From Pseudomonas aeruginosa PAO1 (lineage in GTDB: Bacteria; Pseudomonadota; Gammaproteobacteria; Pseudomonadales; Pseudomonadaceae), in the NCBI RefSeq assembly GCF_000006765.1, contig NC_002516.2: a stretch of DNA of 64,000 bases; one strand, 5' to 3'. Shown one piece after another: positions 4,104 to 52,406 of this stretch; the first letter of the stretch is position 1; each line of letters opens with the position of its first letter. Made by a program: the position numbers and the translations under genes. The notes below the pieces were generated by a model, which was given only the letters and a program-made list of their open reading frames with translations, had not been told where the DNA came from and did not search any database.

Positions 4104-5120
4104 TCAACCGGGCCGGTAGCATGTCTCCCGGCTGAGTAAAGCCCAAAGGATCCGGGCATTCTTGTTGGCCAGGGCAACGGCGACGACATTGGCAGGACGC
4201 CGTTGCAGCAGACCTTGCAGCCAGCGGCTGCGGGCATCGGTCTTGTTGGCGCAACAGCGCACGACTGCACGGGCGCCATGGATGAGCAAGGTCCGCAAGT
4301 AGGTATCGCCGCGCTTGCTGATGTTGCCCAAGCGCTGCTGCCCGCCCGTGGAGTGCTGCCGTGGCACCAGGCCCAGCCAGGCCGCAAACTGGCGGCCCGT
4401 GCGGAATTGCCGTGCATCACCGGCGGATGCCGCCACCGCGCTGGCGCTGATCGGGCCGATGCCTTCCACCGCCAGCAGGCGCTGGATGCGGGCATCGCCA
4501 CGTACGTGAGCCTGAATCTGTCGCTCCAGTCGAGCGATGCGCGCCTCCAGCGTCTGCAATTCATCTTTCAATTCACGCAACAGCTCGCCCATCGGGGCCG
4601 GCAAGGGCGCCGGCTCGGTAGCCATGACCGTTTCGAGCAAGGCCATCGTCGCCGCTCGCCCACGTCGAGTCGCGATCAGCCCGAACTCACCCAGCAAGCC
4701 ACGCACCTCATTGCACAACGCCGTGCGGGCCCGCACTAGACGACTGCGCACCCGATGCATCGACTGCACGGCCTGCTGCTCTGCGCTCTTCACCGGGACA
4801 TAGCGCATGCTCGGACGACTGGCGGCTTCGCAGATCGCCTCGGCGTCGTGTGCATCGTGCTTGTCACCCTTGACGTAGGGTTTTACGAACTGCGGTGCGA
4901 TCAGGCGTACCGTGTGGCCCAGCTCCCGCAACTCGCGCGCCCAGTAGTGCGCACTGCCGCAGGCCTCCATCGCCACCAGGCACGGCGGCAGTTGGCGAAA
5001 GAAATCCCGCACCTGTGCCCGCTTGAGTTGGCGACGACATACCACATGCTCGTGACGATCAACGCCGTGCACCTGGAATACTTGTTTTGCCAGATCCAGA
5101 CCAATGCGACTAAGGTTCAT
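4104..5120 (-). CDS. IS110-family DEDD transposase/recombinase, 338 aa
   Basis: IGLDLAK, VAMEAC and KHDAHDA (DEDD RuvC-like domain); C-terminal GLVPRQHSTGG serine motif; ATG at 5120 after GGAG. Confidence 0.95.
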   Translation of the reverse strand: MNLSRIGLDLAKQVFQVHGVDRHEHVVCRRQLKRAQVRDFFRQLPPCLVAMEACGSAHYWARELRELGHTVRLIAPQFVKPYVKGDKHDAHDAEAICEAASRPSMRYVPVKSAEQQAVQSMHRVRSRLVRARTALCNEVRGLLGEFGLIATRRGRAATMALLETVMATEPAPLPAPMGELLRELKDELQTLEARIARLERQIQAHVRGDARIQRLLAVEGIGPISASAVAASAGDARQFRTGRQFAAWLGLVPRQHSTGGQQRLGNISKRGDTYLRTLLIHGARAVVRCCANKTDARSRWLQGLLQRRPANVVAVALANKNARILWALLSRETCYRPG

Positions 5121-48425: not shown

Positions 48426-48653
48426 GATGCCGCGGGAAAAATCAGTGGTTACGCGTCGCGTTACGACTGGATGACGCTTCACGGTCACGTTGGCCAGGCT
48501 CAATGTTCGCAAAAAAACTGTACTTTGTTCCAGATAAATCTAAAAACAGTACACGATTTATCACGAGCCCAACTGCGGCGCGGCGTCGCAGGATGTTTCA
48601 CTGCGCTGCGAGCGCCTTGCCTATACTCCCGGAATCGCCCCAGGAGCCTCGCC

Positions 48654-49097
48654 ATGCCCGTCCATGCCGCATCCCTCGCCGATCTCGCCGACCTGGTTCC
48701 GCTGTTTTCCGCCTACCTCGACTTCTACGAAGTGCCGGCGCCGGAAGAGCAGGTTCGCGCATTCCTCGCCGAGCGCCTGCGCCAGGGCGATTCGACCCTG
48801 TTCCTGGCCAGGGATGCCGAGGCGCGGGCGCTGGGCTTCGTCCAACTCTATCCGCTGTTCGCCTCCCTGGCGCTACGACCTTCGTGGCTGCTCAGCGATC
48901 TCTACGTCCGCCCGGAGGCGCGTCGCCGGGGTGTCGGCGAGGCCCTGATGAACCAGGCCCGGGGTTTCGCCGAAAGCATGGGCGCCTGCGGCCTGCAACT
49001 GGAGACGGCGAAGACCAACCACGCCGGGCAGTCGCTCTACGAGCGCCTCGGCTATGTCCGTGACGAACAGTTCTACACTTACTGGCTGCAGCTCTGA
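48654..49097 (+). CDS. GNAT acetyltransferase
   Basis: LSDLYVRPEARRRGVGEAL and AGQSLYERLGY motifs; RBS AGGAG. Confidence 0.88.
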   Translation: MPVHAASLADLADLVPLFSAYLDFYEVPAPEEQVRAFLAERLRQGDSTLFLARDAEARALGFVQLYPLFASLALRPSWLLSDLYVRPEARRRGVGEALMNQARGFAESMGACGLQLETAKTNHAGQSLYERLGYVRDEQFYTYWLQL

Positions 49098-49128
49098 ACT
49101 CCCATTCGTCCCAGCAGGAGGCAAGCTC

Positions 49129-49644
49129 ATGGATCACCTGGTCCTGACCGTGATCGCCACCGACCATCCCGGCCTGGTCGAGCGCATCGCCCAATGCATC
49201 GCCTCCCACGGCGGCAACTGGCTGGAAAGCCGCATGTCGCGGATGGCCGGGCAGTTCGCCGGGATACTGCGGGTGGCCGTGCCGGCGGAAGGCTACGACG
49301 AACTGGTGGAAGGGCTACAGGGCCTGTCCAGCCACGGTATCCGCGTGCTCCTGGCGGAAAGCGGGATCGAGCCGGTATGCAACTGGAAGCCTATCCACCT
49401 CGACCTGGTGGGCAACGACCGCCCCGGTATCGTGCGTGACATCACCCGGCTGCTGGCCGAGCACGGGGTGAACCTGGAGAGCCTGTCCACCGAAGTGCGC
49501 CCGGCGCCGATGAGCAGCGAACCGCTGTTCCATGCCGATGCGCTGCTGGCGGTGCCGCTGACCCTGTCGCTGGACACCCTGCGCGAGCGACTGGAAGACC
49601 TGGCCGACGACCTGATGGTGGAGTTGGTGCTGGACGCGTCCTGA
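49129..49644 (+). CDS. Double-ACT-domain protein (GcvR-like)
   Basis: Two ACT repeats (DHPGLV, DRPGIV); RBS AGGAGG. Confidence 0.85.
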   Translation: MDHLVLTVIATDHPGLVERIAQCIASHGGNWLESRMSRMAGQFAGILRVAVPAEGYDELVEGLQGLSSHGIRVLLAESGIEPVCNWKPIHLDLVGNDRPGIVRDITRLLAEHGVNLESLSTEVRPAPMSSEPLFHADALLAVPLTLSLDTLRERLEDLADDLMVELVLDAS

Positions 49645-49672
49645 AGTTGTTCAGGAAAGCCGGGGACGGGCC

Positions 49673-50331
49673 TGTGGAAAAGCCTTGGGTGAAACCCTGA
49701 AGCCCAGGCGCCGCGAGGCTTGGAGGTCGTAGCGCGTTTTTTGACCAGCTACGTTGCGGTTATTCCCAAACCAGGTGGACCAGCCTGTGGGTATTCTGTG
49801 TGGATAACCTTGCAGGCCTTTATCCATGGGCGATACAAGGGTTTGCTCGTTTTCTGAGCAGCCTCTCTTGCGCTTTTTCTTGTGGATTAACCTTCGCCGC
49901 AGTCATTGCCCCTGTGCACAAATAACGTGGAGCAGTCTGTGGGTAAGCCGGGGAAGAATCCATGCAGGCCTTTATCCATCGGCACTCCAAGTATCCGTAC
50001 GTTTTTTGATCGATGGCTCTTCCGGTTCATCCACAGTTGCTCACAAAAGCCTTGGGCAGCTTTGTGGATAAGCCTTGTGTATATCGCTGTAACCCTTGGT
50101 GAGCATGGCATACAGCGGTATGCTCAAAGACTGAACAGGCGCTTTGCAGGGCCTCTTCCGACCAGTTATCCACGCGCCTGCGGGGAGGAGAAGGCAGGTC
50201 TATGCACAAAGTACGTGCATGAACCTGTGGAAAAGCCTGGGGTGGATCGCTGAGCGTCAGTATTGACAGGGGCTAGGAAGGAGTGCGCGTTTTTTCGCCA
50301 GGCTTGCGGAGTTCCGCAAGCCTGGGGATAA
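49673..50331. promoter_or_regulatory. DnaA-box cluster with interleaved Fis sites (DARS/datA/DBC-like)
   Basis: Perfect TTWTNCACA boxes at 49673, 49799, 50063 and 50226. One-mismatch boxes at 49760, 49881, 49913, 49938, 50027, 50076, 50166, 50200 and 50323. Two-mismatch boxes at 49786, 49820, 49972 and 50037. Confidence 0.85.
50298..50325 (-). terminator. Terminator hairpin of rarD
   Basis: CCAGGCTTGCGGA-GT-TCCGCAAGCCTGG, a 13-bp stem just after the rarD stop; no U-tract follows on the rarD (minus) strand. Confidence 0.6.
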
Positions 50332-50333
50332 CG

Positions 50334-51230
50334 TCAGCCCGGTTGCGGCAGGCGGCGCAGGCTGCGCCAGGCGTCGAAGCTGTAGACGGCCAGGGCGAGC
50401 CAGATGAAAGCGAAGGCGGTCAGGCGGCTGGAGTCCAGGTGCTCGCCGAACAGCAGGATCGCCTGTAGCAGGACCAGCGTCGGTGCCAGGTATTGCAGGA
50501 AGCCCAGAGTGGCGTAGGGCAGGTGCCTTGCCGCAGCGTTGAAGCAGACCAGCGGAACCAGCGTCACCGGGCCCGCGGCGACCACCCACAGGGCTTCCGG
50601 GGTGCTCCAGAAAGCCGTTTCGCTGGTCGGCCCGTCGGCGAAAAACAGCAACCAGACCAGCGCCAGCGGCAGCAGCAGCCAGGTTTCCACCACCAGTCCG
50701 GGCAGCGCGGCGACCGGCGCCTTTTTGCGGATCAGGCCGTAGAAGCCGAAGGTCAGGGCCAGCACCAGCGACACCCAGGGCAGGCTGCCGAGTTGCCAGA
50801 CCTGCTGCGCCACGCCCAGCGAAGCCAGGGCCACCGCCAGCCATTGCAGGGGACGCAGGCGTTCCTTGAGCAGCAACATGCCGAGCATCACGTTGATCAG
50901 CGGATTGATGTAGTAGCCCAGGCTGGCTTCCAGCATGTGGCCGTTGTTCACCGCCCAGACATAGGTCATCCAGTTGCTGGCGATCAGCAGTCCGCTGGCG
51001 GCCAGCACGACGAAGCGCTGCGGATTCTGGCGCAGCTCGCGCCACCAGCCCGGGTGTTTCCAGAACAGCAGCAGGACGGCGCCGAACAGGGCCGACCAGA
51101 CCGCGCGCTGGACGATGATTTCCACCGCGGGAATGCGTTCGAGCAGTTTGAAGTAGAGCGGGAACAGCCCCCAGATCACATAAGCCGTCAGGCCGAGGAC
51201 ATAGCCCCGACGGAGGTTGGCGGTCGCCAT
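50334..51230 (-). CDS. rarD: EamA-family transporter RarD
   Basis: AYVIWGLFPLYF, ASLGYYINPL and LGFLQYLAP motifs. Confidence 0.92.
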   Translation of the reverse strand: MATANLRRGYVLGLTAYVIWGLFPLYFKLLERIPAVEIIVQRAVWSALFGAVLLLFWKHPGWWRELRQNPQRFVVLAASGLLIASNWMTYVWAVNNGHMLEASLGYYINPLINVMLGMLLLKERLRPLQWLAVALASLGVAQQVWQLGSLPWVSLVLALTFGFYGLIRKKAPVAALPGLVVETWLLLPLALVWLLFFADGPTSETAFWSTPEALWVVAAGPVTLVPLVCFNAAARHLPYATLGFLQYLAPTLVLLQAILLFGEHLDSSRLTAFAFIWLALAVYSFDAWRSLRRLPQPG

Positions 51231-51431
51231 GGAGAATCCTTGAAACGTCAGGCAGGTAAGAATGGCCGTGCACGGCATGCACGCGCGGATGACCTGTGAA
51301 TTCTAGTAGGGGGTGACGGGGTTGTCTGCGCACAGTTCCCGCGGAAAAGCACCGGCACACTTGCCGTTCCCTCGCCTGCCCCGAGGCGGGACGGATAGCG
51401 CCGCGCGCCATTCGCCCTGTCCGCAGGAGGC

Positions 51432-52406
51432 TCAGAACAGCCGCAGCGGTTCCTCGTCCAGCGCCGCCAGTTGTTCGCGCAGCACCAGCACCTGCTCGCC
51501 CCAGTAACGTTCGCTGCCGAACCAGGGGAAGCTCGGCGGGAACGCCGGGTCGTCCCAGCGCCGCGCGAGCCAGGCGCTGTAGTGCATCAGGCGGAGGCTG
51601 CGCAGGCCTTCGAGCAGCGGTAGCTGGCGCGGGTCGAAGTCGTGGAACTCGTTGTAGCCGTCGACCAGTTCGGCAATCTGCGCCAGGCGTTCGTGGCGCT
51701 CGCCGGCGAGCATCATCCACAGGTCCTGGAGGGCCGGGCCCATGCGGCAGTCGTCGAGATCGACCATGTGGTAGACATCGTCGCGGCACAGCAGGTTGCC
51801 TGGATGGCAGTCGCCGTGCAGGCGGATCGGCTGGTAGGGCACCTCGGCGAACAGGGCGTCGAGGCGTTTCAGCAGGTCGCGGGCGACCGACTCGTAGGCC
51901 GGCAGCAGGCTCCTGGGGATGAAATTGCCTTCCAGCAGGGTGGCCAGCGAGGCGTGGCCGAAGTTATCCACAGCGAGCGCCTCGCGGTGCTCGAACGGCC
52001 GCGTGGCGCCGACCGCGTGCAGGCGGCCGAGCAACTGGCCGAGGCGGTAGAGCTGGTCGAGATTGCCCGGCTCGGGCGCGCGCCCGCCGCGCCGGGGGAA
52101 CAGGGCGAAGCGGAAGCCGGAGAATGCGAACAGGCTTTCGCCGTCGCGCGACAGCGGCGCCACCACCGGCACCTCGCATTCCGCCAGCTCGGCGGAGAAG
52201 GCGTGCTCCTCGCGGATCGCCGCGTCGCTCCAGCGGTCCGGTCGGTAGAACTTGGCGATCAGCGGCTCGCCGTCCTCGATGCCGACCTGGTACACGCGGT
52301 TTTCGTAGCTGTTGAGCGCCAGCACCCGTGCGTCGCTGAGATAGCCGAGGCTTTCCACGGCATCCAGGACGAGGTCGGGGGTCAGTTGGTCGAAGGGATG
52401 GGACAT
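51432..52406 (-). CDS. srkA: Ser/Thr kinase SrkA (RdoA/YihE)
   Basis: LNSYENRVYQ, KFYRPDRWS, LHGDCHPGN and DLDDC motifs. Confidence 0.93.
   Translation of the reverse strand: MSHPFDQLTPDLVLDAVESLGYLSDARVLALNSYENRVYQVGIEDGEPLIAKFYRPDRWSDAAIREEHAFSAELAECEVPVVAPLSRDGESLFAFSGFRFALFPRRGGRAPEPGNLDQLYRLGQLLGRLHAVGATRPFEHREALAVDNFGHASLATLLEGNFIPRSLLPAYESVARDLLKRLDALFAEVPYQPIRLHGDCHPGNLLCRDDVYHMVDLDDCRMGPALQDLWMMLAGERHERLAQIAELVDGYNEFHDFDPRQLPLLEGLRSLRLMHYSAWLARRWDDPAFPPSFPWFGSERYWGEQVLVLREQLAALDEEPLRLF

Follow-up and report, generated by a model that had tools for sequence, protein, structure and literature searches.

The intergenic gap between an ACT-domain gene and rarD in Pseudomonas aeruginosa is, to judge from its organisation, probably a locus, not described before, that controls the replication initiator DnaA. 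The reading we prefer, at about even odds, is more specific: a conserved tandem locus of the DARS type that would be coupled to Fis and act on DnaA. Our literature searches (Pseudomonas DARS, datA, DnaA ChIP and Fis ChIP), whose coverage of the literature was incomplete, returned no report on such elements in Pseudomonas or on this gap.

Genomic setting of the gap

The window, by which we mean the whole 64-kb stretch of DNA that was analysed, has a GC content of 66.6%, and the 689-bp gap (49645-50333) one of 54%, its GC profile running between 0.50 and 0.60. The gap separates two convergent genes:

49129-49644, + strand: gene for an ACT-domain protein (PA0484-like), with NCBIfam ACT-domain matches; its stop codon precedes the first repeated unit, M1, by 2 nt
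50334-51278, - strand: rarD (PA0485-like), encoding an EamA-family transporter (TIGR00688, 248 bits), convergent with the ACT gene

The appendix of PMC9736018 lists PA0484 as an ACT domain protein and gives the gene as convergent with PA0485; the same study places their intergenic region at position 546,136 (~546 kb) in strain PAO1161, which is origin-proximal. In a large deletion study, growth was impaired in only 19 of 938 strains lacking a hypothetical protein, and the PA0484 mutant was one of them (PMC13680508); as unit M1 begins 2 nt past the stop codon of the PA0484-like gene, a PA0484 deletion or its polar effect might touch the array described below.

Scans for sigma-70 promoters and intrinsic terminators (49400-50600) found none, and an Rfam search in a permissive E-value mode (48500-51500) gave no match; this convergent setting, lacking promoter-like, terminator-like and Rfam matches, counts in favour of a control locus. 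An exact 32-mer search of our genome collection, in which P. aeruginosa did not appear and the nearest genome is P. paraeruginosa (95% amino-acid identity), also gave no match. Nor did a blastn search of the intergenic region against plasmids, and there is thus no sign that the gap has a mobile or plasmid origin.

Five tandem cassettes in constant register

A repeat search combined with a nine-species alignment resolved the gap into five 100-bp cassettes (M1-M5) and a truncated sixth. Each unit consists of DnaA box a (+), 5 bp, box b (-), 3 bp, box c (-), 2 bp, box d (-), a 39-bp spacer and a Fis-like 15-mer. The units start at 49647, 49760, 49912, 50037 and 50200, their c boxes start at 49673, 49786, 49938, 50063 and 50226, and in every one of the five the 15-mer begins at exactly +59 relative to box c. 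The features of the array are as follows, with mismatches out of 27 counted over the a-b-c core:

49647-49746, + strand: M1; box a 49647-55 TTGTTCAGG, box b 49661-69 CGGGGACGG, box c 49673-81 TGTGGAAAA, box d 49684-92, 39-bp spacer, Fis-like 15-mer 49732-46 GCGCGTTTTTTGACC
49760-49859, + strand: M2; box a 49760-68 TTATTCCCA, box b 49774-82 GGTGGACCA, box c 49786-94 TGTGGGTAT, box d 49797-805, Fis-like 15-mer 49845-59 GCTCGTTTTCTGAGC; 7/27 mismatches
49881-49889, - strand: extra single DnaA box TGTGGATTA, 1 mismatch, in the M2-M3 linker
49912-50011, + strand: M3; box a 49912-20 CTGTGCACA, box b 49926-34 CGTGGAGCA, box c 49938-46 TGTGGGTAA, box d 49949-57, Fis-like 15-mer 49997-50011 GTACGTTTTTTGATC; 7/27 mismatches
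50027-50035, + strand: extra DnaA box TCATCCACA, 1 mismatch, 1 nt before M4
50037-50136, + strand: M4; box a 50037-45 TTGCTCACA, box b 50051-59 CTTGGGCAG, box c 50063-71 TGTGGATAA (perfect), box d 50074-82, Fis-like 15-mer 50122-36 GCTCAAAGACTGAAC
50166-50174, + strand: extra DnaA box TTATCCACG, 1 mismatch, in the M4-M5 linker
50200-50299, + strand: M5; box a 50200-08 CTATGCACA, box b 50214-22 CGTGCATGA, box c 50226-34 TGTGGAAAA, box d 50237-45, Fis-like 15-mer 50285-99 GCGCGTTTTTTCGCC (1 mismatch, at +4); 6/27 mismatches, the best in the window
50292-50331, unstranded: remnant of a sixth unit; 19-nt inverted repeat (89% complementary) with TGGGGATAA at 50323-31

The remnant can be aligned with the B3 unit found in relatives, and the end of rarD truncates it. 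Cassette length is constant (100 bp) and linkers vary; the two units of a pair are ~112 nt apart, as they are in relatives, and the 113 nt between M1 and M2 is the canonical pair spacing. M1 has the weakest core (10/27 mismatches), yet its box c has a single mismatch and its 15-mer is a full match to the Fis pattern at +59.

A first-pass annotation of this DNA had described the five 15-mers (the last with one mismatch) as dividing a DnaA-box cluster into repeated modules, and our analysis bears this out. The 15-mers stand where it had put them, at intervals of 113, 152, 125 and 163 bp that hold 3-4 DnaA boxes each (at ≤2 mismatches), and the 17-bp repeat TGCAGGCCTTTATCCAT, present at 49811 and 49963, precedes its 15-mer by exactly 34 nt both times. 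This repeat (49811-27, within the spacer of M2, and 49963-79 in M3) occupies an identical unit offset, +51, in the two units; together with the shared unit layout and the +59 register it shows the modules to be real duplicated cassettes delimited by the 15-mers.

The gap is rich in DnaA boxes: it contains 9 of the 15 boxes with ≤1 mismatch found in the window, 16 boxes at ≤2 mismatches compared with 1.2/kb elsewhere in the window, and at least 25 box-like sites in its 689 bp. Besides box c of M4, a perfect box (TGTGGATAA) lies at 49799-807, overlapping box d of M2. Box c is the strongest position of the unit (0-2 mismatches in the window, mean 0.8 genus-wide) and box b a weak one (3-5 mismatches in the window, mean 3.7 genus-wide); taken together, boxes a and b in the window have 2-5 mismatches. 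In units of type B the a boxes (TTGTGCACAA) are palindromic, which makes their orientation ambiguous.

Each unit has the geometry of a DARS core

We scanned E. coli DARS1, DARS2 and datA in the same way as the Pseudomonas units. The core of DARS1 reads TTATCCACT-ATTCC-TGTGGATAA-CCA-TGTGTATTA and that of DARS2 reads TTATTCACC-TTTTC-TGTGGATAG-AGT-TGTGAAGAA, so that both follow the scheme (+)I-N5-(-)II-N3-(-)III, with the 5-bp head-to-head gap described for the DARS core (PMC6868365); every Pseudomonas unit has exactly this geometry. When the 27-nt composite pattern a-N5-b-N3-c was run over both strands of the 64-kb window, four matches were obtained at ≤9 mismatches, namely M2-M5 with 6-8 mismatches each, and none elsewhere (0.009 expected at ≤8 mismatches); the same scan scored DARS1 at 3 mismatches and DARS2 at 5. 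Across 80 related loci (~670 kb) there were ~200 matches at ≤8 mismatches, all of them in the ACT-rarD gap and on the + strand, where 0.1 were expected. This geometry is no artefact of how the units were selected, as anchoring on strong (-) boxes alone brings back both other boxes, (+) at -26 and (-) at -12, together with the +59 15-mer.

M2-M5 thus have the three-box arrangement of a DARS core (boxes I and II head-to-head at 5 bp, box III after a further 3 bp). They lack the high-affinity nucleation site that DARS1 has in box II; instead it is box c, the counterpart of box III, that is strong.

Conservation and distribution

Comparison of the window with P. paraeruginosa revealed 2 differences in 180 positions of boxes a-d and 2 in 75 positions of the Fis-like 15-mers, where one falls on an N position and the other exchanges one Y for another, so that the pattern is kept. 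There were 22 differences in 195 spacer positions, 15 in 189 linker positions and 3 in 50 positions between boxes. The contrast between boxes plus 15-mers (4/255) and spacers, linkers and inter-box gaps (40/434) is strong (Fisher p=3e-5) and indicates that the boxes and the Fis-like sites are under purifying selection.

The ACT/rarD flank pair was present at 76 of the 80 genome loci, rarD not being found at three and one fragment being too short, and cassettes are carried by 71 of these 76. Their number ranges from 0 to 6 across lineages: in the fluorescens group the gap measures ~240 bp and contains two units with a spacing of 112-113 nt, four to six units are present in the alcaligenes, PDM15 and 8AS groups and, at the threshold used, two or three in the nitroreducens group, and the resinovorans group has no cassette in its ACT-rarD gap. 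A metagenome scan with one core pattern yielded 53 loci, 50 of which have ACT and/or rarD beside the match where the flanks are in reach. The other three are contigs of 57-61% GC with a single cassette whose +59 site is intact, without ACT or rarD nearby (L096 1156, L098 5877 on the - strand, and L120 2086); the neighbours of these cassettes are divergent rlmF-like and tcdA-like genes, named from N-terminal sequences only. It is the cassette, and not the neighbouring genes, that is the conserved entity. We also noticed Pseudomonas-type ACT-gene sequence in a 480-bp scaffold of Christiangramia aestuarii (L010, 100% identity to the ACT protein of the window) and in a Gordonia sp. assembly (L051), both of which look like contaminant contigs.

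The Fis-type 15-mer

The pattern GNNYR-N5-YRNNC is a loose one, with 393 matches in the window (6.1/kb). In the gap five were observed where 2.8 are expected from its own composition (P=0.14), so the loose pattern by itself is not enriched and its frequency is at the chance level. When an A/T centre is required as well, there are four matches in the gap and 0.36 expected (P=0.0008), these four being three of the sites noted earlier and one at 50204. Four of the five sites that end the cassettes are full matches to the 15-bp Fis pattern and the fifth has one mismatch; the fourth has A/T at only three of its five centre positions.

What is decisive for the reality of the 15-mers, despite their chance-level frequency, is their register and conservation. 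Among 211 distinct units from 78 Pseudomonas loci and the window, the pattern stands at +59 with at most one mismatch in 199 (132 full matches and 67 with one mismatch; 12 have more), while its occurrence at other offsets in these 211 units is at background level. In a logo built from 69 representative units (<80% identical), the left half has T-8 in 56, G-7 in 65, T-5 in 40, Y-4 in 65 and R-3 in 65 units, and the right half has Y+3 in 61, R+4 in 51, A+5 in 37, C+7 in 66 and A+8 in 50. Positions -6 and +6 are unconstrained, and the centre consists of four W positions that flip between A-runs and T-runs across units and species. The conservation of T-8, A+8 and G+9 makes the site, at 15-17 bp, longer than the classical 15-mer.

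This logo fits the Fis signature, with its two-fold symmetry and a centre read by shape. One form in which the Fis consensus is given is GNTYAAWWWTTRANC. It is also written GnnYAnnnnnTRnnC (PMC8682772), and footprints of P. putida Fis have been obtained at sites that the E. coli Fis matrix predicts, among them TTGTTTCATTTTTGATCCAG (PMC5612765); the TTTTTGATC half of that site is present in the window site at 49997.

Spacer repeats, IHF-like sites and unwinding elements

The spacer of M4 contains the only strong spacer repeat among the units of the window, a 24-nt inverted repeat (50075-98/50104-27). GC-rich inverted repeats likewise occur in the 39-bp spacers of many relatives, although not universally (e.g., L002 5068, L003 5069 and L033 4637, beside 50075-50127 in the window), and their pairing is kept while the sequence differs between species. 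We considered a conserved RNA or DNA hairpin in the spacer and rejected it, the alifold consensus being empty and only 26% of units folding with z<-2 against shuffles.

No match to the IHF consensus WATCAANNNNTTR at ≤1 mismatch was found in 49645-50333, in agreement with the first-pass annotation, which had seen no good IHF site. In other species the junctions between A and B units have A6 followed by TTCAAnnnnTTG in a subset only. An IHF-like site at these junctions was a candidate that we dropped: perfect matches (TATCAAnnnnTTG) are found in two relatives (L012, ~4840-4865, and L021, ~4835-4860), and the site is not conserved genus-wide and is absent from the window. In several species the 15-mer that follows A-type units is itself an A6 tract, with (T/A)TTCAAnnnnTTG 8-9 nt further on, a layout of A6 tract and IHF consensus that resembles the one of lambda H'.

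The gap also has no AT-rich unwinding element, its minimum GC being 0.40 in 30-nt and 0.44 in 50-nt windows, and hence does not show the combination expected of an oriC, a DnaA-box cluster adjoining such an element. As such an element is absent and oriCII of P. aeruginosa lies upstream of gidA (PMC13438810; 10.1101/2025.08.05.668638), we rejected the idea that the gap is the second autonomously replicating sequence (oriC2) of this species.

Comparison with E. coli DnaA-binding loci

Of the known loci, DARS2 (mutH-rppH intergenic region) comes closest; it shares with the Pseudomonas array a three-box core in which I(+) and II(-) stand head-to-head at 5 bp and III follows II in the same direction after 3 bp, Fis-consensus sites on the box III side, further low-affinity boxes at 2-3-bp intervals, and a non-coding chromosomal location. 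The two differ in that DARS2 has one core and Pseudomonas five to six in tandem, in that the Fis-type site is +59 nt from box III in Pseudomonas but ~150-190 bp away in E. coli DARS2 (box V at +185), and in that DARS2 needs an IHF site (IBS1-2) between its core and its Fis sites where the gap has no IHF match at ≤1 mismatch. The anchor box is III in Pseudomonas and II in E. coli. Synteny differs as well, with DARS2 located by mutH, DARS1 by uvrB and the Pseudomonas array by the ACT gene and rarD, and there is no alignable homology to DARS2 beyond the boxes. In the literature that we could search, reports of DARS homologues extend no further than V. cholerae/Vibrio and Shewanella (PMC8682772, PMC6090056).

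The first-pass annotation had called the array DARS2-like on the ground that it has Fis sites without an IHF match. This argument is weak, as E. coli DARS2 requires both Fis and IHF (PMC8682772) and Fis without IHF therefore does not favour DARS2; a likeness to DARS finds strong support in the DARS-core geometry of each module, so that the earlier interpretation, which is supported in part, seems right in direction, for stronger reasons than those given.

DARS1 (bioD-uvrB) resembles a Pseudomonas unit in having, 2 bp after its I-N5-II-N3-III core, a 9-mer that is a weak likeness of a box (GTTAGAAAA) where the unit has box d, and a box III' of DARS1 is mentioned in PMC6868365; a short inverted repeat (GCAAGC...GCTTGC) follows the core in the same relative place. 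DARS1 is a single core with no requirement for Fis or IHF, whereas in Pseudomonas the cores are repeated and each is coupled to a Fis-type site. No Fis pattern was found at +59 in either E. coli DARS1 or DARS2.

datA, like the array, lies on the origin side of the chromosome and consists of clustered DnaA boxes outside coding sequence, and it too has a head-to-head box pair, although with a gap of 3 bp and not 5 bp. It has no repeated cassettes and no DARS-type trio, and it needs IHF; the gap has neither the box layout of datA nor its combination of a box cluster with an essential IHF site. The oligomerisation region of oriC (R2-Fis site-C3/C2/I3/C1-R4) is similar in that a strong box nucleates weak boxes at 2-3-bp gaps and a Fis site is embedded among them. 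Unlike oriC, the Pseudomonas array has no AT-rich unwinding element and is not located by dnaA or gidA, oriCI and oriCII being elsewhere.

Alternative explanations

We weighed two alternatives to the reading of the 15-mers as Fis sites. That they are functionless chance matches in a moderately AT-rich spacer would agree with the frequency of the loose pattern, both in the gap and window-wide, but their position at +59 in all five units and in nearly all units genus-wide, the few pattern-preserving substitutions relative to P. paraeruginosa, and the retention of the site in a different genomic context on the single-cassette contigs contradict it, and we give it almost no credence. It is also improbable that the T-tract 15-mers are parts of a terminator or 3'-UTR RNA, or targets of another dimeric protein, and that the DnaA boxes are independent of them. 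The location between convergent genes would suit such an origin, as would the GC-rich inverted repeats in the spacers of many related units, the 26% of units that fold with z<-2, the A-type units of the alcaligenes group, in which a hairpin is followed by TTTTCTTT, and the conserved positions beyond the classical 15-mer. Against it, the region has no terminator-like site, no Rfam match and no consensus RNA fold, and wherever an inverted repeat exists the T-tract lies ~14 nt beyond it. In addition, G-7/C+7 and the YR steps are retained as the A/T centre switches from one strand to the other, which points to a two-fold-symmetric protein site and not to the T-run of a terminator.

A serious rival to a DARS-type role, although in our estimate an unlikely one, is that of a negative regulator, either datA-like, with assembly of ATP-DnaA and ATP hydrolysis, or a titration sink for ~25 DnaA molecules, in which the Fis-type sites would modulate occupancy. 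It owes its seriousness to the anchor at box III, the weak boxes a and b, the b-c-d arrays and the origin-proximal position. A strong box with weak boxes in the same direction at 2-3-bp gaps has been described as optimal for cooperative ATP-DnaA binding (PMC8682772), and this is how box c is flanked; the density of box-like sites would suit titration, the ~546-kb position in PAO1161 is comparable to the relative position of datA, and ATP-DnaA and Fis compete at FBS2-5 of E. coli DARS2 (PMC8682772). On the other side, the function of datA needs an IHF site, of which the gap has none at ≤1 mismatch, and the datA head-to-head gap has the wrong length. The conservation of the (+) box a at exactly 5 bp throughout the genus also speaks against this role, as box a would be dispensable in an array that merely titrates DnaA on head-to-tail boxes.

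Several of these observations count against a DARS-like role: boxes a and b are weak, the anchor is box c (III) where in E. coli it is II, the head-to-tail b-c-d array with its 2-3-bp gaps also suits ATP-DnaA oligomers (PMC8682772), and the origin-proximal position resembles that of datA more than that of DARS2. The need of E. coli DARS2 for IHF, its distant Fis sites and the lack of a +59 Fis pattern in DARS1 and DARS2 weigh in the same direction, as do the palindromic B-type a boxes, the resinovorans group without a cassette and the loose Fis pattern that is not enriched in the window.

A possible mode of action

If the array is nevertheless of the DARS type, DnaA would nucleate on the high-affinity box c and spread to its weak neighbours b, d and a, and the a/b pair would form a head-to-head dimer like the one by which ADP is ejected in E. 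coli DARS. Fis, which is plentiful when cells grow fast, would bind ~6 helical turns away, bend the DNA, and activate or gate each cassette, and P. aeruginosa would have no need of IHF. PAO1 cannot do without Hda (PMC13729189), which implies that a pool of ADP-DnaA exists that would need recycling. What our analysis shows is the geometry of the pattern, with its register, conservation and uniqueness, whereas occupancy of the array by DnaA and Fis is something we infer; that the effect is reactivation rather than inactivation of DnaA is speculative.

On this reading the array may, and here we put the chances at somewhat less than even, be the first locus for DnaA recycling of the DARS type to lie beyond the E. 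coli-Vibrio-Shewanella group, in a genus without a mutH-linked DARS2. It would consist of tandem autonomous 100-bp cassettes of core and Fis site, in which copy number (0, 1, 2 or 4-6), and not an IHF switch, would tune the capacity for reactivation and its coupling, by way of Fis, to growth rate. For the regeneration and restraint of ATP-DnaA beyond E. coli and its close relatives, the array offers a concrete, deletable candidate control element in Pseudomonas. A 100-bp unit with a fixed DnaA-Fis spacing would be a natural minimal substrate for biochemistry, and the variation in cassette number from lineage to lineage a natural experiment on dosage. The array also shows that head-to-head DnaA pairs with a 5-bp gap are more ancient, and spread over more lineages, than one would gather from the loci of enterobacteria.

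Further observations

Outside the gap, two more DnaA boxes with ≤1 mismatch were found at 51500-52000, in the region of a yihE/srkA-like kinase gene. ChIP-seq of the TetR-like regulator PA3973 gave a weak peak (fold 5.1) at 546,136, between PA0484 and PA0485 (PMC9736018), which could reflect heavily protein-bound, easily ChIP-ed DNA. Lastly, our scan of the E. coli DARS2 region (L082 1152-1186) turned up a second, weaker trio with DARS geometry (7 mismatches), TTATCCCAG-N5-TGTGGATAA-N3-GGTGTAAGA, ~300 bp from the canonical core.
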